This document shows, piece after piece, positions 1-55,028 of a stretch of DNA of 64,000 nucleotides. Numbering within the stretch: position 1 is the stretch's first letter; the number at the start of each line of letters is the position of its first letter. Origin of the DNA: Orbicella franksi (lineage: Eukaryota); contig OZ116710.1 of the NCBI GenBank assembly GCA_964199315.1, forward strand, positions 17,546,001-17,610,000. Direction: 5' to 3'. The notes under the pieces were generated by a model, which saw only the letters and a list, made by a program, of their open reading frames with translations, was not told the origin of the DNA and did no database searches. Position numbers and translations under genes: made by a program.

Positions 1-1619
1 TACCATTCCAGTATCCCTATCGTCGTTGATATTTTTCCAAACACACTGTTTCCAGTTACTTGTCAGCGTCCCTGGAAGTCCCTGGGGGCCTGGAGGGCCT
101 TGACTTCCTGGTTTGCCATCATAGCCTTGGTCTCCACGTTGTCCCATGGGTCCTTGCGGGCCGGACGACCCCGCAACACCTGCTGGTCCCGCGGGACCCG
201 GACTGCCAGGGATACCTGGGATTCCTGGTGCGCCACAACAGCAACTTTGACCGCAAGTCGGTTGAATTTCCTTGATTAAAGTAGAAAGCAAAATGAGAAT
301 TTGTTAGCTCATAAAAGTTGCTTTGGAGCACAGAACGGATACATCTATTCTTCCGTTCTTTCCGAATGGTCTCTGACCTCTTTGGTAGACTGCGAGACTG
401 AATTTTTCATCCGAAAAAAAATATTAAGAGTTTCCTTTCATTACATTCATTATTGCAGCCATTACAAGAAATTGAGCATCGGATGGGTTAATTAGACGTC
501 TGTGGTCAAACCTAGCAGAAAGATTTCACAGCAGGAGCGTTTAGAGTAAAGAGAGGTTGTTAGCAATAATAGATATGTCATAATATTCACTTTGATTTTA
601 AAAATAATTTCTATTTACAAGGCTAAAGAAGTTCAAAGTAAAAAACCGAACGTTTTCGACAGTAGGTCATTTTCAGATATCATGCACTTTCTAAGGAAGG
701 AGGGGAGTGTGATGCGGTCTCTTAAAGGTGCGTTCCTTAGTACGGAGGGTTGATCATGATTCGGATCATCCGAAAGGAACACACATGAATTCGGTTTTAG
801 TCATACTTAGAGTGAGTTTGTTTGCTATCAGCAAACTGTGAACATTTTCTAAATCTTGATTTAGATGCAACTCAATATTGTCTGCATTGTCACCTGCATA
901 TGTAAGATGGTTGTCATCAGCGTACATCCTCGGTTCACAATTTGACAGACAGTTTGGAAGATCGTTAATATATAATAGAAATAGTAGTGCCCCAAAAATC
1001 CTCCCCTGGGGGACGCCAAAACTTAATGAACAACTTTTAGAGAGCGACGCGTTGATGGGGCACATTTCAGTACGATTCTCTAAATATGACTGAAACCATT
1101 TGTGCGCGTTTCCATATATGCCGTGGTCTCTTAATTTTGACAAGAGGATCTCGTGGTCAGCTGTGGCGAAGACCTTTTTTCAGGTCTAAGAAAACAACGC
1201 ATTGATTTTGCCGCGGTCAATGTTGTACGCCCAAGCGTCCGTGGCCTCAAGGAGAGCCGAGACAGTTGGGTGTATAGCACGAAAATCCGATTGATATTTA
1301 TAGATGATGTCATGCTCTTCTATGTTGGCGTATAATAATTATTGACCATAGACGATTCCTCCAAAGACCTTGGCCACAACTGAGATCACTTATGTCATCT
1401 TATCTTATTTTATCTTATCTTACCTTTTTAATCAGCCGGATTTTAAGTATTAGGGATTGATTTATACTGACTAGCTTTTTAATGTAATCAACTCACTTTG
1501 TCTTGACTTGAACTTGCACTTGATTTGCTGTCTGCTGTGGCGCAGAAAGCGATCAGCGGTAAAACGAGTAAACTTAACATGGTGTGGGAAATGTTCATTT
1601 GACTTTGATATGATGGCAT
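1..1619 (-). CDS. CTHRC1: CTHRC1-like secreted short collagen, left copy (partial). Coding exons 1497-1619 and <1-270; the 3' exon lies outside the window
   Basis: Exon 1497-1619 encodes [41 protein letters not shown] (signal-peptide-like), with acceptor tcgcag at 1625-1626 and a phase-0 donor GTGAGT. The exon starting at 270 (acceptor atcaag) encodes [12 protein letters not shown], 19 Gly-X-Y triplets and [20 protein letters not shown], and is open to the window edge. Confidence 0.85.
766..1345 (-). mobile_element. Degenerate LINE (CR1/L2-like) reverse transcriptase fragment inside a CTHRC1-like intron
   Basis: Translates across frameshifts to ...[21 protein letters not shown].., [30 protein letters not shown] and MYADD. 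Confidence 0.85.
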
Positions 1620-1650
1620 TTGATCTGCGAGTAAGAATAAATAGAGAATA

Positions 1651-2964
1651 CAGTGAAACCTGTATTAAGCGGACACCATCTATTAAAATTTCTTCCCACA
1701 TTAACTTTAAAATAAACCTGCGTGCAGCGGATGGGGACACCAATATCAAGCCATTTTGTCGCACAAAACCAGCAAAGCGGACACTTCAAGGGCTTTTTAC
1801 CTCTAAAAGCTCAGCACAGACTCCTTTAACATCGGTCAGCGATGTCATTTTAAAGCTAAGTAAATTATTTTAGATTGATACGTTTACTCGCGGCATGAAC
1901 ATTGTGTTAGACTGTGTTAGACTGTGTTACAAAAGATTTAATAATTGCGTTCGACGAAGTGGAACGCAAACCTAATTGTGACCTGTGGCTTTTCAGAGTT
2001 GGTTGCCCTGTGCATGGTTATAGGCAGAAAACCCCACATTCCTGTAAGGACACCAAAATGGCCACCCCGCTTGATTTTTGCAGGGGCATGTCACGGCCAA
2101 TAAACTGGTAGCGTTTAATGCTAAGACATGTGATAAGACATGTGGCGAACATGTGAGTATGTGAGCAGGCTATGTGAGCTCGTCTTTCCTATGGATCTTT
2201 TTTTGACTTCTTTCCATTCAGTCGCCGTACGCTTCGCTATTATGTGGTCTCAGCGTTAGGTTTGGCGAATTTAAACGCTTCGACGGTGGCATTTAACGAA
2301 ATCTGAGGGAATTGTCCTTGTTTATTAACGCGACTTGGCTTTGGGATGATAATCGTGGGAACAGCTACATTTTGATTGCATTTGTTGATTGGTTCAGTCG
2401 CGACAGATAGCTCAGTCTTTATCCGGTCGCAATTTTATTGTTTGGAATCGGTGGAAAAGTACTCTGTAGGCAAGATCCATAAGACTACTTTATTCATTAG
2501 GGGAAATACTCGAATTAGTCGCACGAAGTTTGTTTACGATAATCGACCACGCGAAACGATCACGCGATTGCAAATGCTAGCTTAGAATAATGTACGTAAT
2601 TTAAATATTCTATGAAACTTGAGAGTCTACAGAAACTGGCAGCGTCACGCAACGTATCGACAAATCGTGACCTCTTCACTAGCACGGACTTCGACACTAT
2701 GCATATCTGACTGTAAAACCTCGGTTGCTGCTGAAAAATGCTAATTTTAGCAATAGACAAAGGTTGAAAGTCAGCTAGTGAAATCATTTATTTACGGTAT
2801 ATATATGTTAATGTGAGAGCGTCGAACGCGCTCTCATAATCTCTGATTACTACTAGTTAACTAATACTCCACAATACATTAGAACCTGTTTAGAGCGAAC
2901 ACCCTGTATTAAGGGCACATTAGCGAGTGTCCCAAGGGTGTCCCTTTTAATTCAAGTGTCACTG
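1651..2964. mobile_element. Tc1/mariner-like non-autonomous element (TA-flanked), probably with nested inserts
   Basis: TA|CAGTGAAACCTGTATTAA ... TTAATTCAAGTGTCACTG|TA: imperfect TIRs with TA on both sides and no transposase ORF. Confidence 0.6.
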
Positions 2965-3743
2965 TAGTACCACAGTATGTGGTTGTGTGCAGAGATTTGC
3001 AAATTCTCCATGGGTAATTAACTTGATATCTTTTTATATAACACTAACATAAAAAGAAATAAGGAGATGTTGACTATTCCTGAAAATTGTTTGTTTGAAA
3101 ATGATCCTCAGTCAAGCGAAAGTTTCCGATCATTTTCCGAAAAATTCCAAAGATTTCTCGAAGATTTAGGAGAGACATTTATAATTGTGTTGGACTATTA
3201 CTGTTCAGTTTATTCATTAGTTTAAAAGAGACTGTCGGACAGATATTGGAAAATGTTTCGACTAACAGTGTTTCATTACTTGGCAATTGTTATTTCATCG
3301 TAAAATTGTCAGCGGTAAAAGTCTGCATCACAGTTTGTATGACGAAATCAGTCGTGGCTTACAGTCTGGTGATGTGCGACTTATGACCTCGGTTCTTCAT
3401 TCTGGTTTTGACTTACACTGTAGAAAACGACATTTGTGAGAATAGTTTCTTTTGTCATTTAGTCGAATCGTAAAGACTGGTTTTCATGTGATCTTTACGG
3501 TAGCTACAAAAAAAGTCGAGGCAGCCCACTTGACGTGAAAACTTCGTTTTCGTTCTAGAAAAAACATAGTTTGAAAAGGTTTTTGCGGGTGTGCAGTTTC
3601 CAGTATTCAAGCGCGTACCGTACAAAGTCATCCGATACATAATGTGGGTTAGCGGTTATCAAGAAATAATACCTTCAATTCATCATTTACTGAGCAAAGC
3701 AAAACAAAGTTACTGCATTTAAGTTCATCGGTTAAGTGCCTAC

Positions 3744-3804
3744 CTTGCAGCTGTGGTTGTGGAAGAAAATGGTCACAATTTGAAGAACGTTTTAGCTTTA
3801 TATA
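3744..3804 (-). promoter_or_regulatory. Candidate TATA box and short non-coding first exon of the CTHRC1-like gene
   Basis: TATATAAA on the minus strand at 3797-3804, then ~30 nt ending in CAAG|GTAGGC (donor at 3742-3743). Conserved at 32544-32604. The signal-peptide exon has a strong acceptor, which implies an upstream exon. Confidence 0.4.
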
Positions 3805-5049
3805 TCCAGTTTCTGGAAAACACCAGTGTCATGTTTCTAAAATATTAAAGTTATATTTTGGTCTGTTCCGGTTTGAAGGGGTACAGGTTAAGACATGTTT
3901 GAAAGTTGAGCACGTTCCCCCAAAAACTATCACAACAAAACTGTAAATTTGTAAACTATTCTACAGTGTTGAGGAAATATATCAAACACCGGGGACAAGG
4001 TTTTATCACATTCCTCAACACCGAAAAAAAAGTTGAAAATAGGACGTGCGGCACAGTGGAGTATTTTTAACGAACTTCGGCACGTTCTGCTCCTTACCAC
4101 GAAGATCCAATTAATACATTGTCCTTGAAGTTGGCTGAGGTTCATGATTGTTTCTTTGTGATCTATCGAAACAGCAATTCACGCTCTTAACACGTGGATA
4201 TATTTGTACGTGCGCTATAAATTACCCACCGTTAAACATCGAGGTCAACAGGTCTCACACCTGATTAGCTGCGTGTAGTGTTGTTTGTATAAGGACTGCC
4301 ACATGATTCATACATGTGAAAAGGATTTTGTTAACACCTATAAATCCTCAGTTCAGCCTGACTGACATTTATTACGGTTAATTTATTTAGCCCAAAGCAT
4401 AGCTATTGAATGTAATGCCTTCTAGTACAACAAATAATTACAAAAGAAGCTGCAAAATTACAAACAAGATGACTCTGAGAAGACAATTTTAATAAATGTT
4501 AAAATCTTCGATTACATATGTGCACAGTTAATCAATCAGCTTTAATGTACTGGTAATTTTGTAATATATTGAGGACCTTTGTAATCCCTAAACAATTTGA
4601 GGGCTTTTGTAGGAACTCGAAACCAGTCCGTTTAGCAACAACCTTACACAATTTAGCGATCCAGCAAAGGTACGTGGACAATTCACGTTTTCTGTTTGTT
4701 ACTATTTGAGACAATTCGATTGCTTCTGGAATAAAGTACATCCCCGAGGGTTTCCACCGACTGCCTTGATAATTAGTCTAGCGTCCGTTCTCCTGGTTAA
4801 GATTCTCGTCAGATAAATCTTGTCTAAAAGTTTCAATGTTTGAATCCACCACCACTTCCGTAATTGAAGTCTGGTGTGTTCCAGGCTCCAAATTTGTAAG
4901 GGTAATCGGGCGTTTTGCAGCGAGCGGAAGCTGGTCCTTTCGGCCTATCTCTCCTCCCAGTTCTCATTCCACTCACTGTCTTCCCCTTCGTCGCCATCAT
5001 TCGCGCTACGAATCCAATCTTGGTCTACGTGCTTCTGCGACCGTTGCAC

Positions 5050-7279
5050 TCACAACTGGGACACCGATAAACGACGCAGATCATGTCGCACTCCGCACGT
5101 GGCTGCATCCAGGCTGGTCTCGCCAATACGCGTGGTGGCGGTGCGGCTGGGCTCAACCGAAGCATCTCTGAAAAGGTTTCTGAAGGCGCGCTTGAATTCG
5201 TTCAACCTGAGCATGTAAATGATCGGGTTTAGAGCGCTGTTTACTCCCAGCATTACAATAACGGCAGAGCGGATTGCATCGGGTACTCCTGGGACCGAGT
5301 TTGACGGTGAGCAGGACATAGACCACCGCTGGACATAGCAGAGCACAAACGCTCCAATTACCATTACTGTAAGAAAGAAAAGGGAAATTAGAAAGATATC
5401 TATATTGATTACTAGAAATGGTACGATGGTGAACGTTCACTGATCTTAGCTGGTCTAGGGGACGCCACACCCTTCCTATCATCACACTAGCAATACAGCC
5501 TACAGAAATATACAGGGTTTACTGCAATTACGAACCAGTGGAAGGAAGAGCCGATAGACTGGAGCGTAACGAAAAGTGAAAGAGCAAAAATAATGTGGTT
5601 GGTCCTTATATCTACAATCATGGGCAAAAATATTGGGCAAATTTACACTTGTGGCGCTTTCTCACGTAAAACAAACAGTCGCGGGCGAATTCAGCTACAC
5701 TTGCTCACCCCCTCACCGTACTCGTAAGTTTTCCTGTCCTGTCTTTTTTATTGGATGGCGGACAGGGATATGGCAAGGCATTTCAAAAAGGATTTTCCAA
5801 ACTTCAGTCTGCATGTTGTAAAACACAGATAACAAATGGCAATGCAACAGCGGTCAAGGCTCGAGCTTTGGCCGGGGACAGTGTGCTGATTCTTGGTCAA
5901 GACACTATTACTAGATTGTCTCTTGTCACCCCGATACTTAAATCGGTTCCAGAAAATTTAATGCTAGGAGGTAACCCTGGGATGTACCAGCATCCGACTG
6001 TTCGAGTATTGTTCGAGCATTCAAGGCAAGTGGCCTGATGGGCCACTTAGCTTGAATGCCGACTTTGCCTTAACCTTACCCTTAGGTGTAATCAAGTGTC
6101 GTGAGCTCAAAATCATCTCCCACAGTGCAGGCGGGTACAATTGCGACACGAAAAATAAATAAATAAATAAATAAATAAGTAAAGATCGAAAAAAACAAAG
6201 GTCGACAAACCTTTACAAGGGACAATACTGGCCCTAGTAATAATTTTTATCTACGCTTCCGCGGGAGAGTATTAATATTATTTTTAATTTGCTATGACAC
6301 ACACGATGTTCGTTTCACAAAATAGGCGTTTGTAGCTCACGCTTTTGACTATGCTATCGGTTTCTTTTAGTCCTAAATATAGAATTTCCTGGTTAAAATG
6401 TGCATTTAATGTATTTTCTGTCAGTCCTGTCAGTGAGCTAATCGGATAGAATGTCATTATGCTTCGGAAACTAAATTACTATAGTAAAGGGAAACAGAAT
6501 TTAAACTATCAGTCTCTTGCTACCTATTGTCTTCATCCATTTCATCTCTTTCCTCCTCCTTCTTCTCATGTCAGCTATCTCAGGATTCAGGTTTTCGCCA
6601 GGCTCAACTCGGTTGCTCTGAAACCAAGAGATCTTAGCGATGTGGCCGTAGACGAATATCAGCACCACAAAAGGAATCGCATCGAACAGAGTGATGTTGA
6701 AGACAAGATGGACTTTGTGCAATAAGCCATGTTCACTAGTGGACTCTGAGCAACCTAAGATGCTTGTTCTAAACTGAGTGTTGTCACTGTCAACATAAAA
6801 CAGGGGCAATACCACCATGGAAACCACAGGAGCACCCCAGACTACTAACAAGGCTAGTTGTACGCGTGTTCTAGTGACAATTTCAGTGTACCTCAGAGGG
6901 TAAAGGATAGCTATGTAGCGATCGCAACTGAGTAGACAAATGTTAGCAATATCGACGTGCAAGAGTGTTGCTTGTATGATTACGAAATGCTCGCACAATT
7001 TGGACACAGCCTCAAAGTCGTAGAGCCAGATCAAGCGAAAGAGAAGACACGACAGCCAGGAGAAGTCAGACATTGCTAAGCTGGCCAGAATATAACTGTC
7101 TGGTTTTTGCGGAGGCTTCTCACGCGCCAAATGGCCAAACAAACACAGATGTTACCAACCAAGTTTGCTATGACAGTGGGGCCTAGAACTGCAGTTTGTA
7201 AGGCTGTGGATACAATACTCGGAGACGGCGCAGTGAAGCTCCCGCCAGAATGTCGAGACCCGTCAAACGAATCGCCCAT
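5050..7279 (-). pseudogene. Orphan class A GPCR type A, copy A1, frameshifted. Exons 6524-7279 and 5050-5366
   Basis: Versus intact A2: a 1-nt deletion at 7109/7110 (stop after 67 aa), plus -1 (~5331) and -2 (~5289) deletions in exon 2. LAMSD, DRY and NPIIY motifs are still recognisable. Confidence 0.85.
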
Positions 7280-7280
7280 G

Positions 7281-10138
7281 CTAGTTTGTTGGCTCGATGC
7301 CTTACAAGTTTGCGTCGCTTGATTACTAGCACTGCATGTTTATGAGCGGCGACTTAATTTTCACCTCACTTCTTTATAAATAGTTCTTTTCTTAAATGGC
7401 TTAGATAAACTTCCTCGTTATTGTTCGAGCGGCTTGCAAATTTTTAAGTAATAACAAGGCCGGAAAATAATATTCAAATCCAGAAACGAAAACCGAGAAT
7501 TCTCCTAGCACGAATCGACCGTTTACGAAACAATCCTCTTGTTTAAACGGAGGAATGGAAAGAGCTTCCGATGAAATCTCACGAGAAGAGTTTATCACAA
7601 ACTAACAAGGTTATTTAACAATATAAGTGGACAAAATACCCGAAAATTAAGAGAGATTCTTCAGGTCGCTCGCAGTACAATGTTTGTTTTCGTAATAGTT
7701 ATAAAGGCGACTTTTAACGTGTGTTTAAATTTTGAAACTTGAACGCAAAACTGCAATAAACATTTCCCGAAGTAACACAGGGGAGTATATGGAAAGCCAA
7801 ATAAATGATGAAATCCGTTAAGAGTTCAGTTTTCATGATTAAAATACCGAAATTGCCGCCCAATTTTAACAGGAAATAACATACTTTGTTTATTATCGCA
7901 GCCATTCAAAACAGTTTAATCTTTATAATCTGCCTTGAACTTTTTTCTTTTCTTTGAAACAGGTGACTATAGACAAATGCTATTAACATCACTTATTTTG
8001 TTAATCGACATTTAAATCCAGTGATACTAAGGGAGGGAAGTATGGGAAAGCACATGCCAAGTCCAGAATTTTTTTTAATGAAATTTCAGTTTAAATGGTC
8101 AAATTTCAGTACCGAAAATAACAAGAAATTAAAGAGCATACTGTATTTGGAGAGCCTTCATTGGCGAAAGGTGTCCAAGTTTTAATTAGTATTATTATTA
8201 TTGTTGTCGTTATCAATCAATATCATATGAAAGCGAGAGCAATTAAGGATTTTACGGTACGAGTGATATTTCGAAAATTCTTAGCCCAGTTTAGGCAAGT
8301 GTAATTTGAAAGAATTTCTTAAATAAAAATTAAAAATAAAAATCGTAACCACATTCAATAAAAAATTATTCTCTTTAAGTTGGAAAATTTTAAAAAAACT
8401 TGTTCGGAAGGGGTAAAAGATACAGCTGAAATCGTGCACAAAAGCCGTTACTCAAGGATAAAATTTGTTATTGTATTTGGAGAAATGTTTCACTACACTG
8501 GTATCCTAGTGAACGAGCGAGCCGTGAACATTATGTGACTTTGCGCGTCAGCGTTAGAACAAAAAACATGCAATGAAACGACTTACTTCGACCTTTCTGT
8601 GTGCTACTTGTGTTTCCGTGCCGTTTCAAAGCGATTCTAATGAGTTATAGTTTCACTTTTACATCTCTCTACATATAGAAAGGAAAACAGTGAGCATATA
8701 TTGAACAATTATGACGTTACGTCTTTTGCGTTACTTTTACATTTCAACCCTTCTCTTTGCTTATCAAAAAACATGAACGATTTTTTCTTTAAAAGTGCAC
8801 CCACTCAAGCAGGTGCAAGTAATAAAACATTAAGAAATTTCCTTCAAGCTAAGCTCGACAGCGAACTTAATGTTCCATTTTGTCCTAAACGAGCACGGCG
8901 ATCTCCACTTTATAATGCATAAATTTAAGTCACAGTGGTTGACTACGGATATACTGCGACTTAAAGAAAAGTTTGAAATTCTGGTCTGATATACTTATAT
9001 CCGGATGCTTTGAAAAACGCATCTTTAGAAGATGCTGGTTGAATATTATTCTGCTCATCAAAATTCGTTTTTAAAATAGAAGTACTTAGAGCTCAAGTTA
9101 AGGTTGTTTTAGTGGCTACTGTTCTCATGGTAACCTTCGTGTCACGAAAATGATAACAGCGTTGTCACCAACGATTGGACAGTCTTGATACCATGATTGT
9201 AGCATCAACTGATAAAGAGTGGTGATATTGGTTCATGAAAATCTAAGTCTTGGAAAGTGCTGGAAACTGTTTTGAGCCACCTTAAAATTGACACTAAAGT
9301 TACAACTCACGTGTTGCGCGAAGACGAAGTAATAAATCACGAGAAATACGATAAGAGGAAACGGTGACACAAACGTAAAAGGTGTCTCCGTCACACATGT
9401 GCCAAGTCTTCCGTTTTTTCCCTTTGTTTTATTATTACTGTTATTTTTGAAAAAAACCTCGTTTCTTTGTAACCTTCACACCTTTCCACCTGCTTTAATT
9501 AAGGATAAAATAAACAAAATTTAAGTACTTAGTTTAAATAAGTGAATAAAGTTTTCATTCATTTGGAATATTTTAATTCCCAAACCATTTTTAAGTGACA
9601 ATTGACAAGGAGTTATCGAAGACTATTTTAGCTAAGAAATGCTATACATTTTATAAAAAGTCCCTCATAAAACTTCTTTTCGTCAAATTTAAAGGTAAAA
9701 CCTACGGGAAGCATTACAATGGCCCTTAATTTTCCGCCGTTTTCTGTTGCTGTGTCAAACCTATTTCGTTAAATGTACACACAAGCTTTGACACTAGTTC
9801 TGAATCAGTTCAGTCCAAGTTTTGAGGCATAAACTTTTTAGGAAGCTGTAGTTTGGTATTTGCGTTCTTAGATCAGGCTGATTTCTTGTTCAAAGCATTA
9901 GGTTATGATTGCATTGAAATAATTACAAAGGATTTCCTTTTAGAGACGACTTTAAATATACGGCAAGGACAAAAACGAGGAAACGAACTCGAGTCGCTGA
10001 AAAAAAAAACAAAAAAACCGTATAAATCGAACGTATATACCCGGAACTGTACGTTTATCAATCGCCACTAAGAAACATACAGTTCCGCCTGCAACTGTTT
10101 CGTAAGAAATCGACCGAGGAAACGAAGTCTTAAACAAC
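7281..10138. promoter_or_regulatory. Divergent (head-to-head) intergenic region between GPCR A1 and B1
   Basis: ~2.86 kb between the opposed ATGs (7279 on -, 10139 on +). Homologous to 20213-22519, 36093-38945 and 49072-53134. Promoter function is inferred from position only. Confidence 0.55.
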
Positions 10139-12167
10139 ATGGATGGTTCTAATAGCGCTTCTAAAAGTTTTGACCCTAGTTTCACAGCGTCTCAGCCAAG
10201 TACCGTCTCTATTGCTTTACAAACCGCTGTTCTGAGCCTCACGTTTATAGCAAACTTGCTCGGTAACATTTCTGTTTGCCTGGTTATTTATGGCACGCGT
10301 TCCCTCAGACAAAGACCAAGCAGTTCTATTTTGGCCAGCTTAGCAATGTCTGACTTCTCCTTGCTGTCGTTTCTCCTCTTCCGTTTGATTTGGCTGTACG
10401 ATTTTGAAGCAGCAAACAAAGCCTGTAAACATTTTATAGTACTGTTTGGAGTACTCTTGTACGTCAGCATTGGTCATATTTGTCTTCTTAGTTGCGATCG
10501 CTACATTGCTATCATATATCCTCTGAGGTACACTGAAATTGTTACCAGAACACGCGTGACGCTAGCCTTGTTGGTTGCCTGGGTTGCTCCTGTGATTTCC
10601 ATGGTGGTCTTTCCCCTGTTTTACGTTGACAGTGACGGCACTCAGTTTAGAACAAGCATCATAGGTTGCTCTGAGTTCACAAGCGAGCATCTCTTGATGC
10701 ATAAAGTTCATGTTGTCTTCAACAGCACCCTGTTCGTGGTGATTCCATTTGTGGTGACGATTTTCGTCTATGGCCATATCGCCAAAATCTCATGGTCTCA
10801 GAGCAGCCGAGTTGAGCCTGGCGAAAACCTGAATCCCGAAACTGCTGACTTAAGGAAAAGGAAGCGAAAAGAAATGAAATGGGTGAAGACAACAGGTAAC
10901 TAGAGCCTTATTAATCCCACTAATACACATCAAATTAATTTTGCTAGTATTCTAAGTTCATTTTATCAACTTTACTTTAGTCCAGATAGCCATTCATTAC
11001 TTTTCATCTGAATCACGTGTAATGTATTTATGGTGATAACACATCACGTTCTTCTAGAATTAATCAAGAGCCCTATGTGTCATCTCCCGTCACATACAGG
11101 CAATTAGAGACCCCGTCAGTACACTAATCACGTGATACAAACACAATGCACGATTTTAATAACCGAAAAAAGCTGTTGTTACGTGAGCTACAAATTTGGG
11201 TTTGACGGCGAGAACAAGGAAGCATCTTTTTTTCAGATTATCATTAAATATGGCTTGCTTCTGAGGGATTATTGATATGGCAATGAGATGTTGCCTGCTA
11301 TAAAATGCCCAGAGTTTACATCTATAAAAGAAACCTCGAAAAAAAAGGCAGAAATCCAAACATTAGCCGGTAAGATTACATGACTTATTTTCGCTAACTT
11401 TGACAGTGAAAAGCCTGGAAAAATCCTGAAAGAGTCTCTGATTCAAAAGGAACAAACCCTCAAGTATCACCCAAATACATGCAGCGCCATGTTGAGTGCT
11501 TTTTTTTTACTGTTTTGAATGATTAGCATGGTATTCCTTGATAATCATTTGAAATTGAATTAAGAGTTTGGGCCGAAAAAAAACATCGATAAGAATGATC
11601 AATCACCAGACAGGTGTGACTTTAAAATATAGCTTCTCAGAATGAGACACAATAATATAGACCTCAAATAATTTTGGTCGAGAGTAAGGATTTGCTTTCT
11701 TACAGACTTCCTCCTGGCCTAAGTTACATTTTTTAACCTGGTTTTGGTTTTTGTGTTTGCTTTTTTCAGTTATCGCGATCGGTGCGTTCACCTTGTGCTA
11801 TCTTCCAGGATTCATCTGTATATTGCTCACGGTAAAACTTGGGCCCAATCGAGTCCCTGACGCACTCCGCCATTCCGTCATCATGTTGACGGCAATAAAC
11901 AGCGCCCTCAACCCAATTGTTTACATGTTCAGATCCAAAGAGTTCAGAATCGCCTTCAAGAAATTATTCAGAGGTACTTCGATTGTTCGCCAGCCGATTG
12001 AAGGCAAAAAGAAAGCCTGGTCACGTCTTGAAGTTTCCACGTGCAACCAACATGGTCGTCAGCCTTCATTTCCAACCGTTCCGACTGCGGATGTGAGAGA
12101 CTTAAGTTTTCATTTACCGGGAAGCTCCGAGATTGCTGTAGAAGTGACTGAAGCAAACCTGCCATGA
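10139..12167 (+). CDS. Orphan class A (rhodopsin-like) GPCR type B, copy B1, 384 aa. Exons 10139-10895 and 11770-12167
   Basis: 757+398 nt with a phase-1 GT-AG intron at the start of TM6. Motifs: GN (TM1), LAMSD, C3.25, DRY, ECL2 Cys, CYLP, NSALNPIVY. Confidence 0.92.
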
Positions 12168-19330: not shown

Positions 19331-19568
19331 TTACGTTTTCGTACAAAATATTCGAACGTACAAAGCAAAGCAAAGCACTTTTCAAGCCTAAACTTTTGGC
19401 CCAGAAATCTAGTATTGCCATTTTCCGCCGAACCAAAAACCACACAGCGATGACGAGTTCAAAATTGACTACTAACGGCCGGGGTTTGAGCAAATTTAGA
19501 TTGTACATTTTCCCGCTAATTTTCGATTTTGCTTGATTCTTGCTGACACTCACTCTTAACGCATCTTA

Positions 19569-30432: not shown

Positions 30433-30463
30433 TTGATCTGCGAGTAAGAATAAATAGAGAATA

Positions 30464-43441: not shown

Positions 43442-44217
43442 AGGTCCGGTAATACGGGCAACATTTTTCTTCAACTTGTCTCGCAACATTGTTGCATTGC
43501 AAGTTGAAACCCTCTGTTGCGCGTATTACCACGTTTGTGGCCAACTTGTCTCGCAACATAATACAGTGTTGCAAGTCTGCGGAATTCTACACGTATGATT
43601 GGTCAATCGTGTGTAAATAAAAATGGTTCCTTCTTTCATAATTAAGCGTTTCGACGAACTTGCACTTCTAGTTCTGGGCGTCATTTTCTTCTTAATTTTC
43701 CGCGCCAGCCAAGTTCTCTTAGAGTAAAGCTCAGTGTCGTTTCAGATAGCTAGGCGAAAAGTTGTATGTTTGCGACAGTGCTTCCAAGCCTTTTGCCCCT
43801 TTTGCCGCTTGTTTTGGAGGGGCAAACGAGGTGTCCCAAAGACTATGTTAGCCCTCGAGGTCTTTGTACAGGGCAAATTTATGACTTTGCGAGAGTTACT
43901 GGCCTACTTCGAATTGACGCTCGTCTTCACCGTCCGCCATGATTGTTTTGTTTGCCGCGTTGCCGCGCTTTCCGACAGCCAATCACAAGCGTTGAATTCA
44001 AATTTGTTGCGAGACAAGTTGTAGCTTCAGTGATAATACGAGCAGCAAAACTGAACTTTGTCCGGTTGCGGAAAGCAGAACTCGAGTCTACTTTGCGCAA
44101 CATGTTGCCTCAACTTGCAACACCGTATTTTGCTGCGAGACAAGTTGGTCACAAACTTGCAATGCAACAATGGTGCGAGACAAGTTGAAGAAAAATGTTG
44201 CCCGTATTACTGGACCT
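43442..44217. mobile_element. PIF/Harbinger-like MITE (duplicate of 14653-15428)
   Basis: Same long TIRs. The left TSD reads CAA and the right TAA. Confidence 0.78.
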
Positions 44218-44737
44218 TAACAGTGCTTTTATTTGGTTAATGATTATGTTATTGCTGATAAAGTGCACGGGTTCCCTGTGCTTTGGGCGTGCGAGAGGAT
44301 TTTCATAAACGCAAATTGAATGGGAGCTTTAAAGCTGCCCACGGACCAAAAATTAAGCTTGTTCTTTTGTTTTTTTAAGCGGTGATGCATTGGTGATGTC
44401 AAACCCTTTGGTGTGCGATTTTGTGTTTTTCACGCTACGGTGTTCGGTAAAATAAAGTTATCTGCGGTGCTGTGGTTTCTTGTTTGACCTTTCTCAGACC
44501 TAAATTCAGCATCCAAACTTCGTTAATCTGTGCTAATCTATGACAAGCACACTGTCTAGTTAAACTTCGATATGCTTCAGCTGCCAGTCCGAAGCTGTTT
44601 TCATTAATACATAACTTGACAAGTAACTTCACCTCTGCCACGATGCAATTGGAGCTGGACCGAATTTATTATTGCTGCGTAGCATTTTCGATTTACCCTG
44701 CAATTAACCATGATTTAGGTCGGTAACCAAGGTTGAG

Positions 44738-47700
44738 ATGACAGATATACCAAGTCCACTTGCGGTTGCATGGTATCTTGAACCCCGTGGTGTCCAGATT
44801 GCTTCAATCTCAATTGGTCGCGTTTTCGACAAAGTTTATTTTCATGGTCTACTACTCAAACCCGGTTTAATTATCTGCTCTCGTCGTTCGACTTCTCTCG
44901 GGGTTGCTATATTGAAGCAAGTGAAACGAGGAACACACGCGGTTGTCTTGCCGTTCGATGCAAACGTCCAAATCAGCGCTTATTTCGCCCTATGCTGTGA
45001 TGTCTCGTCAAATCGATCCTGGCCCAGTGGAAAGACAGACGCTACTCAGAACTACTACCCAGAACATTACTCATGGCAAACGCTCAAGCATGATTGTTCA
45101 CATCAATACCAGAAGTATACTAAAGCACATGGATGAATTAAGGTTGACTTTTGGTGATGTTTATCCTTCAATTATCGCAATAACGGAGACCTGGCTGGAC
45201 GATTCTGTCGCGGACTCTGAGATCTCAATTCTTAACTACTCGTTAGAACGTCTAGACTGAAGCACAAATCGACGAGGAGGAGGAGTAGCGTTTTATTTAC
45301 TGGATGGTTTGAAATATAGTTGTCGAAGAGACTTAGAGGCAGAGTCGGAAGCAATTTGGATTCAAGCTAAATTATGCAACACCAATTTCTTAATTGAATG
45401 CATCTACAGAGCCCCAAACGAATCTCTGGAGGTTTTCAACTACATGGATGATGCGTTGAGATATGCTACACGAAATAACCTCGAAGTCATTATCCTAGGT
45501 GATTTAAATTGCGATTGCCTTAACACCTCTCTTCAACAAACAACAAGATTACAGGAATTTCCTATGGCCAACGAACTAGAACAGTTGATAAAAGAGCCTT
45601 ACCGTGTAACACGCAGCACAAAAAGTCTTATTGATGTACTCATCACCTCCACGCCCAATTTGTTTAAAGCTTCCGGCGCTCTGAGCACAACCTTCAGTGA
45701 CCATTATCCCATTTATGGAATAATGAAATGCCCCGCGGCCTGTCCAACAAAACATCGAATTATTAAAACGCGATCATGGAAGGAAAGCAGTATGAAAGAT
45801 TTTCTCTCTGAATTGGAAAAAACCCCCTGGAGTTTTCTCGATTGTTTTGACGACATCGACGACACGTATTCTGCCTGGGAATCCTTATTCAAGTCTCTTA
45901 TTGATAGTAACTTCCCTACAAAACTAAAGCGAGTACGAAAACAGACACACCCATAGCTTGATAGTTCTGTTCTTCGACTTATGAGGCAAAGAGATCAGCT
46001 ACACAAAAAGGTAATTAAACATGGACTGTCCACAGATTGGAATGAGTTCAAACGCCTCCGTAACATGGTAACGAGCATTAACAGAAAAAGAAGAAAGAAT
46101 TTCTTTGCTTACAAACTTGAAGAGAACCGTGGAAATCCAAAAGCGTATTGGAGAACATTGAGGCAAATTCTACTATCTAAAAGCAAAATATCTGGAACCG
46201 AAAAGTTGGTTGTTGACGAAATAGAACTGAATGATGGGCTCGACATAGCCAACTCCTTCAACGAATATTTTACAAACGTAGCCTCTACGCTGCTTGAGAA
46301 CAGACCATCACCTGGCATACAACAACCAGTACCCCAGTCCCAGACTCCATCTAAGATTTTCAGCCTACCTATTATCAACGAGTGGGACATGTTTAAAGCA
46401 TTGAGTACTACCAATCACACAAAGGCAACTGGTACAGACAACATTCCAGCCAAAGCTTTGAAGATTGCCGCTCCGCATATCAGTATAGTTCTAGCCAAGA
46501 TCTTCAACCTATCATACAGCACTGGTCACTTCCCCTCCTCTTTTAAAGTGGCTAAAGTAACACCTATTTTCAAGGGTGGCTGTAAAACAGAATGCGACAA
46601 TTACAGACCTATATCAGTGCTTCCGTACATCTCGAAGATCTTTGAAGCGTTTACGAACAATGCTCTAACAAACTTTGCACTCTAAGCTGGAATGATAAAA
46701 CAACATCAGTTTGCCTTTATGAAACACTCGTCAACAACAATCGCCCTCATTAAAGCGGTAGATTCGTGGAAAATGGCAATTGACAATACCAAGAAAGTTG
46801 TATGTGCTTTTCTCGGCCTGAGGAAAGCATTTGACACCATTGATCACAACATCCTACTACAGAAACTTTCAAAACATCTACATGGAAAGGAGTACGAGTG
46901 GTTCAGAAGCTACCTATCGGAGAGATCTCAACATGTCAGCTGCAATGGAATTAAGTCTGAACAGCAACAAATCACCCATGGAGTCCCCCAAGGCTCTGTC
47001 TTAGGACCGACCTTATTTAATATACATATAAACGATATATCCAGTGCTTGTGAAAACAGCCAAGTCATTCTTTATGCCGATGACACTGAATTTCATGCAA
47101 GTTCCAATGATGTTGGTGCTGCTGAACAGTGTGTTAACGATGATCTTAATCAAGTAAGCGTTTGGTTGCGCCGCAACGGTCTCATCAGCAACCATAAAAA
47201 GTCCGAGGCTATGCTAGTTGGATCAAGATATTCGGTAGCTAACACTCGTGACTTACAAGTGAAACTAGACGGAAAGCTGTTGAAACAAAGTGAACATTGC
47301 AAATATTTAGGTGTATATATGGACAGTTGCCTAACCTGGAATAAGCACATTACGTATATTGCATCCAGAGTTTACCCTAAACTCAAAATGTTGAACAGAA
47401 TCGCGCCCTTTCTTAGCCAAAGAGTTCTACTGAACATTTATAAACAAACTATATTACCCATCCTAGATTACGGGTGTATCATATGGGGTGTTTGTGGAAA
47501 AAGTAATTCACGACGATTAGAGAGATTACAGAATCAGGCCATGCGTATTATTCTTGCTGCGAATCGCAGAACGTGCTCACAGGATATGCGTAACAGGCTA
47601 TATCTGCTATCCTTAGATAGTAAGACGGCGGTTTTTGAAATTACAATTAGCGTTTAAGATCGTACACAATGTTCACTGTCCGCACCAGTTAGAGGAATAT

Positions 47701-48190
47701 CTTGTTAAGAGGTCTGATCTGCATGGAAGAATACTTAAAGACTCAACACTTTTAAACGTCACACCATCTAAAACGAAAATGGGTCAGTCTACTTTCAAGT
47801 GTGACGCTGCACGAGAATGGAACGGATTACCAAGAGAGATCAGAGAATTAAACACTCTTTCTAAGTTTAAAACACATATTTTTAAGCATTTTATGGATCA
47901 AGACCGTATCAATCGTGTATGTACTGTAAATTAGGTTCAATTTTTTGCTTGTCTGTTTGTCGTTGCTGCTCTTCTTTTTAAATGCTTGTTTTTATATAAT
48001 CTCCACAATGGTTGTAATTTTTAATGTAAACGTTCACTATATATATCTTCTTGTTCTTTTTTTTTAAAGTAAAATTTTATGAATAGCAGTATTTTATCTG
48101 TAAATGCTGATCGCCAGTTAATACCAGGGATCCAGTGATCACTGATTGGCCTTTCAGGTTAAATAAAGTCTTTTATTTTATTTATTTATT
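44738..48190 (+). mobile_element. Decayed CR1/L2-group LINE, right copy
   Basis: APE and RT motifs in ORFs 44943-47934 (AITETWL, NYRPISVLP, GVPQGSVLGP, YADD, KYLGV). Stops at ~45258, ~45954 and ~46683. Confidence 0.93.
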
Positions 48191-48427
48191 TATGTTTTCG
48201 TAGAAAATATTCGAACGTACAAAGAAAAGCAAAGCACTTTTCAAGCCTAAACTTCTGGCCTAGAAATTTAGTATCGCCATTTTCCGCCGAACCAAAAACC
48301 ACACAGCGATGAGGAGTTCAAAATTGACTACTAACGGCCGGGGTTTGAACAAATTTAGATTGTACATTTTCCCGCTAATTTCCGATTTTGCTTGATTCTT
48401 GCTGACACTCACTCTTAAGGCATCTTA

Positions 48428-48854
48428 TGCCCGGGTCTAATGCCATACTTCACATGAGCCGAACCCAATTTAACCTATTAGGTTCATGTGAAGTTCGGCG
48501 TTTGACCCAATTAAGTTCAACTGATTCTATTTGGAGCCGCTGAGGCGTTCTTCACGCCTGGCCAGCCGTGAATAACGCCTGAAGACCTACTTTGGGTCAA
48601 ACGCCGATCTTCACATGAGTCGAACCAAACGCATAATCAAAGGTCTAGGTCTAAAGGTGTCATTTTAAACCTTACCTTGAAAAACCACTGACCAATTGCA
48701 ACAAGACCGCTTTTGTTATTTGTTTGGTGTAGCAGTTTTGTTCGACTGAATTAAGTTCAACGTTTGACTCAAACAGGCGTTCTTACAATTATTTGAGTCG
48801 ACCCAAACTGTCATTAGGTTCGGCTCGTGTGAAGTACGGCGTTTGACCTGGGCC
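48428..48854. mobile_element. PIF/Harbinger-like MITE (duplicate of 19569-19995)
   Basis: Same TIRs, flanked by TTA/TAA. Confidence 0.75.
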
Positions 48855-50129
48855 TAACAGTATCCACCAGACAGTCTTTTTTAACATTTTTTCCCAAATG
48901 TCGTATTTCCAATCTGTCAGAAGAATGTTGAAATTTGAGAAACAAAATTTTATAATACCTGCCTTCTCCTAAAAAAAGCGGTCCAAATAAAGCTAAGAAA
49001 AAGAGAAGGCAGATGACATCCAGGACCTTCTTGTCATGGAGATTAACACGGGAAAGCCTAAGTTCTAAGTTCTAGCTTGTTGGCGCGATACCTATTATTA
49101 AGTTTGCGTCGCTTGATTATTGGCGCTGCCTGTTTATCAGCCGCGACTTAATTGTCACCTGATTTCTTCAAAAATAGTTATTTTCCTAAACGGCTTAGGC
49201 AAACTTTCCTCGTTATTGTTCAAGTGGCTTGAAAATTTATAAGTAATAAGAAGGCAGGAGAAAATTCAAATTTAGTAACGAAAATCGAGAATTCTGCCTT
49301 AGCACGGATGAATCCTCTCGTTCAAACGGAGCAATGGAAAGAGCTTGCGATGAAATCTCATGAGAAGAATTTATCACGTACTAACATAAGATTGAGGTTT
49401 ACTGTAGATAACTTAATAATATATTAGTGAACAAAATACCCCAAAACTAAGAGTGATTGTTCATGTCGGTTGCAGTACAATGTTTGAGTTTCGTAGTCGT
49501 TATAAAGGCGTCTTTTAACGTACGTTTAAATTTTGGAAAATTGAACGAAAATTTGCAATAAACATTTCCTGAAGTAACACAGGCGAGTATCTGAGAAGCC
49601 AAATAAATGATGAAATCCGTGAAGAGTTCAGTTTTCATGATTAAAATACTGAAATTTTCGCCCGAATTATAACAGGAAATAACATATTTTGTTCATTATC
49701 TCAGCCATTCAAAACAGTTTCATCTTTATAATCTGTCTTGAACCTTTTCCCTTTCTTTAGAGCAGGTGACTGGAGACAAATGCCATCAACATCACTTATT
49801 TTGTTAATCGATGTTTAATTCCGGTGATACAAAAGGAGGGAAGTATGGAAAAGCACATGCCAAGTCCAGAATTAAAAAAAATGAAATGGTCAAATTTCAG
49901 TACCAAAGATAATAATAAACTAAAAAGCATTCTGTATTTGTGGGTCACTACTTGGCGAAAGGTCTCCAAGTTTAAATGAATATCATTATTGTTGTTGTTG
50001 TTATCAAAATCATATGAATGCAATTAAGGATTTACAGTACGAGTGATATTTCAAACATTCTCAGCCTTTAGGAGAACGCAATTTAAAAGAATTTTTTGAA
50101 TATAAATTTAAAATGAAAATCGTAACCAT

Positions 50130-51872
50130 CAGGAGCCATAATCGGGGACGGAGACCGTAAGTCTTGGGATCCGCGCGCACCTATGATATGGGACAATTTT
50201 CTATTTTTAGAACAAATTGCGCCATCCTGACGTCATATATCCGCGCGGATCCACGCACATGTCGGGGGTTTTCGTGTGGATGTTGTCACGTTGCATGATC
50301 AAATGGTGAGAGTTGAGAGATTCTCTTGCGTATCTTTCACAGCGATGGCAGGGTATAAGACAGGGACTAAGAACCAGGGCGCTTATATGTAGTTTTATGC
50401 TCTGAGCCAACGGAAAAGGTGGGTTTTTCAGGGTCGAAAACAAGACTTCAATCTCGCGCTGGGAATGAATAATAAGATCTGCTCGCGCTAGTTGTAAGCT
50501 TACGCATATGTTTTTGTGTTTGTTCTGACTTAAGAATATAGCAAGAAAACTCTCTACTCTGGTATCGAGTTAATTTGTGAGTTTCTCGGACAATGGTTAA
50601 TCATAACCAAAACCTGTTTTGATGGTTTCTTATTGCTTCTGCTTGTTTGGTGAGTCTGCAAAAGTTTTTGAAAGGAAAGTCTGACGCGTACAATTAGCTC
50701 ATTTGCATAGTGCGGCTCGTGCACTTTCAAGTCCGAGTCGTTGTTTTCAATTGTCAACAAATCTTGACAAAGATTTCTTTCGTTATCTTTTGTGCTGAGA
50801 TGCTGAAACAAATTTCACGAACGCAAAAAAGGCTACTAACATCATGTGTGTTTCTTCAACATAAGCATAGTGAAGTTTTACACTGCGAAAATGGAAATAG
50901 ACAAGGAGTTTGATAACTCGATCAACAAAATCAAAATGGTTATTCGAAGTTGATTAAAGAAAGCGTCATCGTAACTTTGCTGATTATTTCTGCTTTATTC
51001 GCATATTTTCAGCTTAGCTTTTAATATGTTCTCAAACATTTATCAAGCTTAAACATATTTAAAAACTATAGAATTCTTGTTTGAGTTCGATGTACGCTTT
51101 CACACGAAAGTGCGGCGGAAGTACAATTTGTCATGTTTACTGACTGTACAAAACACGCATCGGCGGGCGCTCTCATTCATCGACAACAGAGAATTTACTG
51201 GATTTTTACACGAATAAAACTGAGCGGTATCTACGGACGTAAAGTTATTGGGCCTTAATGAAACATCAAGCGTTGCTTACAATTCAGGCGAAACTCAAAC
51301 TAAGAATTATTTTGTTTTACTTTTCGGTCGCGATAGACTGGCAAATTCCTCGGAAGCGTGTGGCAAGAGGAGCTAGGAAACTATGAAGTCCTGAAGCTCT
51401 GCTATATCTAAATATATCGAGCTAGTTTTTTGTTGTGTAATGGAAAAGCTGTTAATCTTTAACATATGTGAAATTTAAAGTGGAGTAATGTACAGCTCAT
51501 GTAAAAGAAGCATCCGTCAGAACACAACTTGGTCAGCGATATATATCTAAGCTTAAAGCGGAACATACCCAAATTCGACACTGTCTCACTTCACTCAAAC
51601 TGGAGCAGCTTACGACGAAAATACTTAAGCAAAATTCCAACAGACGTAAACGCGTTGAGTTGTGGGCCAAAAACATAAAAAATATCGGGAATTTCGGACG
51701 CCATTTCCCCCCGCGCGACATCCGCAAAAATCCTCGCAGCATGTACGCGCGTGTGCCGCAGGCGATGGCGCAATTTGTTCTAAAAATAGAATTATTGTCC
51801 CATATCATGGGGACAACCCCAATACTAGAAATGGCGCGCGCTTACGGTCTCCGTCCCCGATTATGGCTCCTG
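50130..51872. mobile_element. Young 1743-bp non-autonomous DNA transposon (P-element-like), present only in the right unit
   Basis: Perfect 32-bp TIR CAGGAGCCATAATCGGGGACGGAGACCGTAAG, perfect TAACCAT target duplication, empty site at ~21270-21276, and no long ORF. Confidence 0.93.
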
Positions 51873-53134
51873 TAACCATTCAATAAATACAGCCAAGAAA
51901 AATTACGACAAAAATTGTTCGGAAAGGAAAAAATATATGGCTAAAAGCGTGTATAATTCCGGTCTGATATGCCTACATCTGGACTGTGAAGAACGCATCT
52001 TTAGAAAATGCTGGTTGAATTTTATCCTGCTCATCAAAATTCGATAAAGATAAAGGGGTCTCCTCGTGCTATTTTTGAAATAGAAGTGCTTAAAGCTAAA
52101 GTTAAGTGTTGTTTAGTAGCTACCTTGTCATGGTAACCTATTGTGTCACGAAAATGATAACAGCGTTTTCAGCAATGATTAGACAGTGTTTTGATACCAT
52201 GATTGTAGCATCAACTGATAAAGAGTGGTTATAATGACTCATCAAATTATCAGTCTTGGAAAGTGCTGGAAACTGTTTTGAGCTACCTTAAATTTACGCT
52301 AAAGTTACAACTCACGTGTTGCGCGAGAACGAAGCAATAAATCACGAGAAATACGAAAAGAGGAAACGTTGACACAAAAACGAAATATGTTTCTCCGTCA
52401 AACATATCCTAAGTCTTCCGTTTTTCCCTTTGTTTTATTATAATTGTTATTTAAAAAAAAAATAAAAACTGCGTTTGTTTGTAACCTTCACACATTTCTA
52501 CCTGCTTTGAGGATCAAATAAACAAAATTTAAGTACTTAGTTTAAATAAGTGACTAATTCCTCTGAAATATTATCATTCTTAATCATTTTTTTAAGTGAC
52601 AACTGACAACGAGTTACAAAAGACTATTTTACCTCAGAAATGCTGTAAATTTTATAAAAAGCTTCTTATCACTTCTTTTCGTCAAATTTAACGGTAAAGC
52701 CTACACAAAGTATAACAATGGCACTTAATTTTCTGATTTTCTGCTGTTGTGTCACACCTATTTAGTTAAATGTACACAGCAAGCTTTGACACTAGTTCTG
52801 AATCAGTTCAGCCCAAGTTTTTTGAAACATAAACTTTTTATGAAGCTGTAGTTTGTTATTTGCGTTCATAGACCAGGCTGATATCTTCTTCAAAACACTC
52901 GATTAAGTTATGATTACATTGAAATAATTACAGAGGATTTCCTTTTAATGACGACTTTTAATTATGCGGCCAGGACAAAAACGAGGAAGTGAACACGAGT
53001 CGTTGAAAAGAACTCATAAAGTCTGTGCATGAAATCCCGCGATTTCATAATCAATCGCTACTGATAAACGTACAGTTCCAAGTACTTCAACAGTTTGGTA
53101 AGAAATCGATCGAGGAAACGAAGTCTTAAGCAAC

Positions 53135-55028
53135 ATGGGTGATTCTAATAGCGCTTCTAAAAGTTTTGGTCCTAGTTTCACAGCGTCCCAGCCAAGTGCC
53201 GTCTCTATTGCTTTACAAACCGCAGTTCTGAGCCCCACGTTCATAGCAAACTTCCTCGGTAACATTTCTGTTTGCCTGGTTATTTGGGGCACGCGTTCCC
53301 TCAGACAAAGACCAAGCAGTTCTATTTTGGCCAGCTTAGCAATGTCTGACTTCTCCTTGCTGTCGTTTCTCCTCTTCCGTTTGATTTGGCTGTACGATTT
53401 TCAAGCAGTAAACAAAGCGTGCGAACATTTTATAGTGCTGTTTATAGTACTGTTGTACGTCAGCATTGGTCATATTTGTCTTCTCAGTTGCGATCGCTAC
53501 ATTGCTATCATATATCCTCTGAGGTACACTGAAATTGTCACCAGAAGACGTGTGACGCTAGCCTTGTTGGTTGCCTGGGGTGCCCCTGTGGTTTCCACGG
53601 TGGTTTTGCCTCTGTGTTTTGGTGGCGGAGCCCACTCTCAGTTTCGAACAAGCATGATCGGTTGCTCTGAGTCCACAGGCGAGCCACCCTCGTTGTACAA
53701 AGTTCATCTCGCATTCAACGGCACCCTGTTTCTGGTGATTCCATTTGTGGTGACGATTTTCGTCTATGGCCATGTCGCCAAAATCTCTTGGTATCAGAGC
53801 AGCCGAGTTGAACCTTGCGAAAACCTGAATCCCGAAACTGCTGAGTTAAGAAGAAGGAAGAAAAAAGAGATGAAATGGATGAAGACAATAGGTAACCAGA
53901 GCTTTGTTAGTCCTAACGGTACACTTTAAATTCACTTTGCTATTATTCTAAGTTCATTTTTGGTCACTTTACTCTGCTCCGAGTCGTGATTCGTTTGTTG
54001 TTGTCCGAACCACGAGTAATGTGCCAGCTATAAAATGTCATTGTCTCTTGAAACTGTGGCCTGAATAAAATAAAAAAAAAATAAAATAAAAAGTTAAAAT
54101 TAAAAAACAAAACTCGAAAAGAAAGGTAGAAATGCAAACAGAAGCCAGCAAGACTAATTTTACATATTTTGCCTAACTTTGTCAGTAAATAACCTGGAAG
54201 ATTCTTGAAAGAACCTCTGAATTTAAAGGAAAATATTCCGGTTAGAGGAAAAGCTTTGTCCAACGTTACATGTACAATGTGTGTCTTACACTTTGTACAC
54301 GTCTGCTAGTACATGTTTGCCACTCCTCTCTGCAGCAGCCTGTTAAGAAGCCTGTTAAGTGCTTTTTTACTGTTTTGAATGATTAGCATCGTATTCCATG
54401 ATAATTATTTGACATTCATATACAGTTCGGGTCGAACTATAAAACAACATTGATCAGTGTGATCAATCAAACTTATGTCGTCTCTTCCAGAGTTGCTTTT
54501 CGTCTAAGTTACTTGTTTTAACCTGGTTATTGTGGTTTTTTTTCCTTTTTTAACTTGTGATTGCGTTAGCAAGCTACGAGTTACAGTAGGTGATCAGATT
54601 ATTGTTTGTTTTTTTTTTCAGTTATGGTGATCGGCGCGTTCACCTTGTGCTATCTCCCAGGATTCATCTGTGTACTGCTCACGGTAAAACTTGGCCCCAG
54701 TCGAATTCCCAACGCACTCCGCTCTGTCGTCATTGTGTTGACAGCAATAAACAGCGCTCTCAACCCGATCATTTACATGTTCAGATCCAACGAGTTCAGA
54801 ATCGCCTTCAAGAAATTATTCAGAGGTAGTTCGATTGTTCCGCTGCCGACTGAAGGCAAAAAGAAAGCCCGTGCTGATAGGCCATGTCTGAAAGTTTCCA
54901 CAGGCGACCAACATGGTCGTCAGCCCTCATTCCCAACTGTTCCAACTGAGGATGTGAAAGCCTTAAGTTGTCGTATACCGGCAAGCTCCGAGATTGTTGT
55001 AAACGTGACTGAAGTAAACCTGCCATAA
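53135..55028 (+). CDS. Orphan class A GPCR type C, copy C2, intact, 387 aa. Exons 53135-53891 and 54622-55028
   Basis: 757+407 nt with the same phase-1 intron. Motifs: LAMSD, DRY, CYLP, NSALNPIIY. Confidence 0.92.

Follow-up and report, generated by a model that had tools for sequence, protein, structure and literature searches.

We analyzed a 64,000-bp stretch of the Orbicella franksi genome (hereafter the window; GenBank assembly GCA_964199315.1, contig OZ116710.1, forward strand), in which a gene for a putatively secreted CTHRC1-like collagen and genes for G-protein-coupled receptors (GPCRs) recur in tandem. The locus is very probably a real and young segmental amplification, which was assembled in several steps by birth-and-death in a robust stony coral; its repeat structure, gene models and lesions, along with synteny and genome-wide copy numbers, were observed directly. 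The source assembly comprises 497 Mb in 805 contigs, and the window lies on the chromosome-scale contig C13 (C13:17546001-17610000). In self-BLAST, positions 4-15467 match 28839-44256 with 96.7% identity and positions 15470-21276 match 44325-50129 with 97.0% identity, the offset giving a repeat period of 28,835-28,855 bases. Open reading frames (ORFs), Pfam domains and tblastn matches display the same gene order twice: CTHRC1-like (-), GPCR-A (-), GPCR-B (+), a block of long interspersed nuclear elements (LINEs) and GPCR-C (+). Both lines of evidence bear out the two colinear units of ~28.8 kb described in an earlier sequence-only reading of the window. The same reading treated the CTHRC1-like gene and all three GPCRs as one duplicated cassette, which agrees with the twofold gene order but overstates the recent unit: the ~97% homology stops at 21276 in unit 1 and at 50129 in unit 2, and the terminal receptor copy, C2, lies outside it.

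The extent of the array was mapped by tblastn and self-BLAST after adding 120 kb of left and 80 kb of right flanking sequence. The left CTHRC1-like gene does run out of the window, as had been noted before, with exon 2 cut at the edge and exon 3 located 774-1133 bases further left. The suspected continuation of the array in that direction is also real: the first 6 kb of the window are found again 11.2 kb and ~40 kb leftward, and the extended comparison reveals a further full unit, a partial unit and an old broken receptor gene. Over ~110 kb the array holds three full units, one 11.2-kb partial unit (CTHRC1-like and GPCR-A) and the older broken GPCR, with the GPCR cluster spanning C13:17.49-17.60 Mb. 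From left to right, its parts are as follows.

Window coordinates -54.8k to -46.5k: Aold, a broken GPCR with exon 1 split by ~7 kb.
Left of the window: U0, a full unit with CT0, A0, B0, LINE and C0.
Left of the window: Up, the 11.2-kb partial unit with CT' and A'; its boundary with U0 lies ~11 kb left of the window start.
Inside the window: U1, a full unit with CT1, A1, B1, LINE and C1.
Inside the window: U2, a full unit with CT2, A2, B2 and LINE.
53135-55028: C2, the terminal copy at the right end of the array.

The junction between the tail of U0 and CT' and the junction between the tail of U1 and CT2 have identical structure, and no run of 10 or more N bases occurs in the 264 kb made up of the window and the 200 kb around it. 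The 11.2-kb partial unit joins exactly at a ~300-bp repeat common to the A-upstream region and the 3' flank of the CTHRC1-like gene, which makes this repeat a candidate crossover substrate. Copies of the ~300-bp repeat, 80-84% identical, are located at 7822-8130, 20760-21042, 25244-25551, 36634-36942 and 49620-49901; they lie upstream of the A and C genes and in the 3' flank of the CTHRC1-like gene.

The receptor genes share a model of two coding exons with a phase 1 join and canonical GT/AG splice sites. Six of them lie within the window.

5050-7279, minus strand: GPCR A1, pseudogene; exon 1 at 6524-7279, exon 2 at approximately 5050-5375.
10139-12167, plus strand: GPCR B1, intact, 384 aa; exon 1 at 10139-10895, exon 2 at 11770-12167, phase 1, GT/AG.
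22520-24392, plus strand: GPCR C1, pseudogene, C/B chimera.
33856-36091, minus strand: GPCR A2, intact, 358 aa; exon 1 at 35335-36091, exon 2 at 33856-34175.
38946-40963, plus strand: GPCR B2, intact, 384 aa; exon 1 at 38946-39702, exon 2 at 40566-40963.
53135-55028, plus strand: GPCR C2, intact, 387 aa; exon 1 at 53135-53891, exon 2 at 54622-55028; non-chimeric and outside the recent unit.

The lesions in these genes record the order in which copies were made and lost. Among the 11 GPCR loci of the array, three are firm pseudogenes (A1, C0 and C1), one is a tentative pseudogene (A', marked by one extra G within a GG run at the start of exon 2) and one is broken (Aold), while the intact genes of the array are CT', CT1, CT2, A0, A2, B0, B1, B2 and C2. 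A1 carries three frameshifts, a 1-bp deletion near 7109 in exon 1 and deletions of 1 bp near 5332 and 2 bp near 5289 in exon 2. C0 and C1 are both frameshifted by the same 5-bp insertion, located at nucleotide 231 of exon 1 (near 22751 in C1), and C0 has acquired two additional indels and a stop codon. With A1 and C1 dead, B1 is the sole intact receptor of unit 1 within the window. The common insertion means that the unit was copied with a gene already dead in it. Both genes are also C/B chimeras, since a C-type 5' part switches to a B-type 3' part. In a sliding comparison, C1 is C-type up to ~22760 and B-type from ~22960 on: identity to C2 is 91-98% in the upstream region and the first ~240 nt and 55-83% from ~22960 on, while identity to B1 is 75-95% and 92-96% over the same two portions. 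The 5' halves of C1 and C2 are only ~91-93% identical. C0 displays the same switch, and C0 and C1 occupy the two internal full-unit boundaries, with the intact terminal C2 being purely C-type. Unequal crossing-over between paralogs on the same strand would leave a footprint of this kind.

Divergence between units shows a similar layering. Counting substitutions only, U0, U1 and U2 are 97-99% identical from exon 1 of A through the LINE block, whereas the CTHRC1 region is a mosaic: U0 differs from the others (90-95% identity), Up and U2 share 97-98%, and U1 and U2 switch from 92-93% to 98.6%. These mosaic identities point to several exchange events. Synonymous divergence (dS) is ~0.03 among units, ~0.2 between B and C2 and ~0.73 between A and B. 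Compared with those of other corals, the GPCR paralogs cluster by species, suggesting that these receptors were duplicated independently in each lineage. Three full units and a partial one, mosaic identities, a lesion inherited by C0 and C1, and later independent lesions in A1 and CT0 all sustain the earlier interpretation of the locus as a birth-and-death expansion.

A sequence of events consistent with these data can be proposed, with both the crossing-over mechanism and the order of steps being our inference. Judging from four other coral assemblies, the starting arrangement would have been a large tandem array of CTHRC1-like genes followed by one to a few coral-specific rhodopsin-class GPCRs and then by a Metallophos (calcineurin-like phosphoesterase) gene. 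The receptor would have split into A and B (dS ~0.73), and B would later have given rise to C (dS ~0.2). A C/B chimera then presumably formed and was inactivated by the 5-bp insertion. Unequal crossing-over between paralogous sequences might next have copied the block of ~28.8 kb, comprising the CTHRC1-like gene, A, B, the LINE block and the dead C/B gene, to a total of three, and the shorter 11.2-kb block of CTHRC1-like and A once, at a dS between units of ~0.03. Independent decay would have followed, with three frameshifts in A1, an 8-bp insertion in CT0 and a possible 1-bp insertion in A'. Physical proximity in one duplicated segment explains why the two gene families travel together, and joint function is not required.

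Several points weigh against this account. Substitution divergence of 1-3% between units is in the range expected for coral alleles, so that paralogs cannot be told from haplotypes by this measure alone. The DNA runs that we examined are Logan contigs, which carry neither depth nor spanning reads. The single extra G in A' falls within a GG run and may stem from faulty assembly. A simple model of crossing-over (non-allelic homologous recombination) predicts a B-type parent gene to the left of the array; none was found there, for which reason gene conversion may have contributed to the C/B chimera. The grouping of GPCRs by species, in turn, could also arise from concerted evolution.

The first of these points bears on the alternative raised in the sequence-only reading, namely that two divergent haplotypes were erroneously assembled in tandem, in which case two or more units would represent one and the same locus. 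Of the sequence words sampled, 50-70% occur in public runs of several related organisms. Among the variant letters listed from independent runs, 26 of 40 equal the base of a paralogous unit, although the units differ at only 205 of 5,992 sites; the unit types therefore exist outside this assembly. This result fits true paralogs and is equally expected if the unit types segregate as shared alleles. In one independent DNA run, different sites carry variants that mark U0, U1 and U2, albeit unphased, which speaks against a false duplication. Three full units and a partial one cannot derive from two haplotypes, and the private frameshifts, the mosaic identity blocks and a 1.74-kb transposon found only in unit 2 are at odds with a false duplication. 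The internal junctions, alike in structure, are as true tandem repeats predict. With three units in gap-free sequence, lesions and a transposon private to single units, and like junctions, a mis-assembly of this kind appears very unlikely.

A real amplification could have been neutral or favoured by selection. Selection for more CTHRC1-like product or for GPCR B might have raised the copy number, with the other genes of the unit hitch-hiking. All three B copies are intact and have ratios of non-synonymous to synonymous divergence (dN/dS) of 0.11-0.34, three of the four CTHRC1-like copies are intact, and CTHRC1-like genes are hugely expanded throughout the genome. The corresponding dN/dS values are 0.62 for A0/A2, 0.40-0.65 for the CTHRC1-like copies and 0.30-0.33 for A against the B and C copies. 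The values among young copies, however, derive from 3-17 substitutions per pair, too few to tell purifying selection from recency, and the rate at which pseudogenes have accumulated is compatible with neutral turnover. We therefore regard adaptive dosage as unlikely.

The array GPCR is a complete receptor of the rhodopsin class (class A). The 7tm_1 profile (PF00001) scores 94.6-108.6 bits on exon 1, covering profile positions 1-205, and exon 2 supplies positions 207-260. The assembled proteins of A, B and C2 all contain the DRY and NPxxY motifs, and the cysteines at position 3.25 and in extracellular loop 2 are readable. The nearest solved relatives are the adenosine A2a, alpha-1A adrenergic, TAAR and histamine H2 receptors, with which the array GPCRs share the 7tm_1 fold, both motifs and both cysteines, though the matches reach only E ~1e-23. 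In aminergic receptors Asp at position 3.32, in the conventional numbering, serves as the counter-ion of the amine. At this position, 18 residues before the Arg of DRY, A carries Gln and both B and C2 carry Phe, instead of Asp. The named proteins that best match the window belong to two robust stony corals, Oculina patagonica and Desmophyllum pertusum; for the GPCR, the best named non-coral protein shares just 28% identity. A further difference from adenosine and aminergic receptors is genomic confinement: all relatives of at least 68% identity are located in C13:17.49-17.60 Mb, and the next best match in the genome has 32%. The N-terminus, as read from the sequence, is short (~25-30 residues).

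The CTHRC1-like gene consists of three exons joined in phase 0 with GT/AG splice sites. Two copies lie within the window, each with a fragment of LINE reverse transcriptase in its first intron.

1-1619, minus strand: CT1, the left copy, frame intact; exon 1 at 1497-1619, exon 2 at 1-270 (cut by the edge), exon 3 774-1133 bases left of the window.
766-1143: LINE reverse transcriptase fragment in intron 1 of CT1.
27502-30432, minus strand: CT2, intact, 251 aa; exon 3 at 27502-27861, exon 2 at 28833-29105, exon 1 at 30310-30432.
29441-29956: LINE reverse transcriptase fragment in intron 1 of CT2.

Exon 3 of CT2 matches the CTHRC1_C profile (PF25815) at positions 25-137 with 156.8 bits against a cut-off of 27, and exon 2 encodes profile positions 2-24. 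Exon 2 also matches Collagen (PF01391) with 40 bits, and its translation contains 18 uninterrupted GXY triplets, compared with 12 in human CTHRC1. The N-terminus encoded by exon 1 is hydrophobic in the manner of a signal peptide (a putative assignment read from the sequence) and aligns with the N-termini of CTHRC1-like proteins of Oculina. The one inactive copy of the array, CT0, is frameshifted by its 8-bp insertion, which lies in exon 3. Genome-wide, the CTHRC1_C exon has 116 matches (E<=1e-8). Among the matches listed, ~55 fall in C13:16.44-17.71 Mb, forming a super-array of ~1.3 Mb that encloses the window, and further clusters are found at C13:19.59-19.64 Mb, C14:13.84-14.29 Mb, C15, C1:27.9 Mb, C11:10.87-10.96 Mb and elsewhere. 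Only 4 of the 116 matches adjoin array GPCRs, and most have no such GPCR nearby.

Tandem expansion of Cthrc1 genes in cnidarians has been described before, the largest coral count reported being 31 (Leclere et al. 2020, PMC7058181). The genes of the present array resemble those described in encoding a putatively secreted protein with a short collagen stretch and a CTHRC1 C-terminal domain, and in forming tandem clusters that diversify by lineage. They differ in number, with 116 CTHRC1_C matches against the reported coral maximum of 31, and in having been amplified within a compound unit together with GPCR genes.

The joint amplification had led the sequence-only reading to propose, speculatively, a linked signalling cassette, in which the CTHRC1-like protein is a ligand or co-factor of the neighbouring GPCRs and both were kept and amplified together as a module. 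The linkage itself recurs in other corals. Pocillopora verrucosa has Metallophos, a GPCR and two CTHRC1-like genes in order; Oculina patagonica has three tandem GPCRs and a run of CTHRC1-like genes 7 kb on; Desmophyllum has a head-to-head GPCR pair adjoining Metallophos, with no CTHRC1 gene found within 10 kb of the pair. One coral assembly from ENA displays Metallophos followed by two GPCRs, and in another, independent and from a related organism, a GPCR lies 7.7 kb from a CTHRC1-like gene. A block of Metallophos, GPCR and CTHRC1 array thus appears to be conserved in robust corals. As the GPCR cluster sits inside the ~1.3-Mb CTHRC1 super-array, however, GPCR-CTHRC1 adjacency is expected without any common function. 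Of the earlier proposal, the linkage stands but is accounted for by the geometry of the super-array, and the coupling of ligand and receptor is unsupported.

Co-amplification of both families and their adjacency in Pocillopora, Oculina, the related ENA assembly and here would agree with a functional module, as would the vertebrate arrangement, in which Cthrc1 is linked to the Wnt/planar cell polarity pathway and adjoins the gene of the seven-transmembrane receptor FZD6 in a FZD6-Cthrc1-Slc25a32 synteny block specific to gnathostomes (PMC7058181). The FZD6-Cthrc1 linkage is the sole precedent that keeps the cassette idea as a long shot. The likeness consists in a Cthrc1-family gene beside a seven-transmembrane receptor gene; by contrast, the coral receptor is of the 7tm_1 family and lacks the cysteine-rich ectodomain of Frizzled, and its linkage is explained by array geometry. 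The small share of CTHRC1_C matches that adjoin GPCRs, all within the super-array, speaks against a module, as does the dead GPCR that the amplified unit already held and the missing CTHRC1 neighbour in Desmophyllum. The receptor, with its short N-terminus, is nearest to adenosine and amine receptors, which bind small molecules. In a CTHRC1 tree the array copies form their own group, and no orthology of array copies to the GPCR-adjacent copies of Oculina or Pocillopora is resolved, the 119-aa domain being too short for this purpose; GPCR-adjacent copies are thereby left without an orthology linking them across species. A complex prediction that paired P0025, a GPCR of Oculina, with the C-terminal domain of the adjacent P0116 returned a score of 0.00, which is no answer and counts neither way on binding.

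Transcript data lend no support to a module. Over 34964-40963, the depth of RNA contigs is about equally low on exons, introns and intergenic DNA, and the contigs contain no exon 1-exon 2 splice joint of the GPCRs; they may be carry-over of genomic DNA or unspliced RNA. In the raw polyA run X37 (from a differently labelled organism, ~12% of the run read) no reads fall on GPCR exons, and reads were placed only on the high-copy repeat at 37964-38163. We hold a signalling cassette to be highly improbable. The more specific proposition, that the coral-specific GPCR and its adjacent CTHRC1-like genes are a conserved functional pair of robust corals, with a secreted trimer acting on or alongside the receptor, appears if anything even less credible. 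If true, the pair would parallel vertebrate FZD6-Cthrc1 and co-amplification would tune the dosage of both partners; a functional pairing would also point to the kind of ligand that an orphan coral GPCR may bind, although nothing in the analysis supports that. The tandem amplification of physical neighbours remains the preferred explanation of the shared history of the two families.

Another polyA run, X25, has a contig depth of 5-10 times that of exons at 34964-35363, on the intron side of the A2 donor, and at 40461-40763, in the acceptor region of B2. These contigs cross the splice sites unspliced, and a retained intron, another transcript or DNA carry-over are possible sources of the excess.

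The remaining features of the window are mobile elements and a gene on the right flank of the array.

12416-19555, plus strand: transposable element block of unit 1, with degenerate LINE ORFs (endonuclease and reverse transcriptase) at 15883-18293; the outer bounds are taken from a separate sequence-only note.
41200-50129, plus strand: transposable element block of unit 2, with LINE endonuclease and reverse transcriptase ORFs at 45309-47657.
50130-51871: element of 1,742 bp with terminal inverted repeats of ~100 bp, in unit 2 only.
60827-64000, continuing to ~65805, minus strand: multi-exon Metallophos gene, placed by tblastx against the Pocillopora locus; a right-hand neighbour that GPCR clusters of other corals retain.

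The 1,742-bp element has at least 40 full-length copies in the genome, 93-99% identical and located on many chromosomes, and is a young, dispersed and recently active non-autonomous DNA transposon. A dispersed repeat of ~920 bp is found at 1939-2858, between CT1 and A1, and at 30750-31670 in unit 2, with at least 40 copies of 88-95% identity across all large contigs. A short element between A2 and B2, at 37964-38163, is repeated at very high copy number: contig depth there is ~100-fold above the surroundings in every DNA and RNA run compared, with many loose ends. An inverted repeat with arms of 1,947 bp, 99.95% identical and ~280 bp apart, occupies -105835 to -103889 and -103608 to -101662 in the left flank, where it adjoins an outlying CTHRC1-like gene. 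A second tandem Metallophos copy is located in the right flank at 72603-79111, and one Metallophos ORF carries a GHDHNLQ-type motif, which we take to resemble that of purple/tartrate-resistant acid phosphatases. An Rfam scan of the 64-kb window gave no match at the gathering threshold.

Tandem duplicates make up ~30% of coral genes, and the rhodopsin-like GPCR is the most amplified domain among them (Noel et al. 2023, PMC10236652). The present array resembles such clusters in its lineage-specific expansion of class A receptors and its wide spread of duplicate ages. It differs from them in the unit of duplication, which is not a single gene but a 28.8-kb multi-gene segment with two unrelated families, a LINE block and a dead chimera. 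As a multi-gene tandem segmental duplication, the locus belongs with events already known from coral genomes. The count of CTHRC1_C matches, more than 100, is well above the published coral maximum and may interest researchers of coral extracellular matrix, growth zones and regeneration. That two expanding families lie side by side is a poor guide to common function when one of them fills more than 1 Mb of a chromosome. The locus offers instead a clean, datable example of how coral gene families are built: a block is copied, a dead chimera is carried along, and the copies decay singly.

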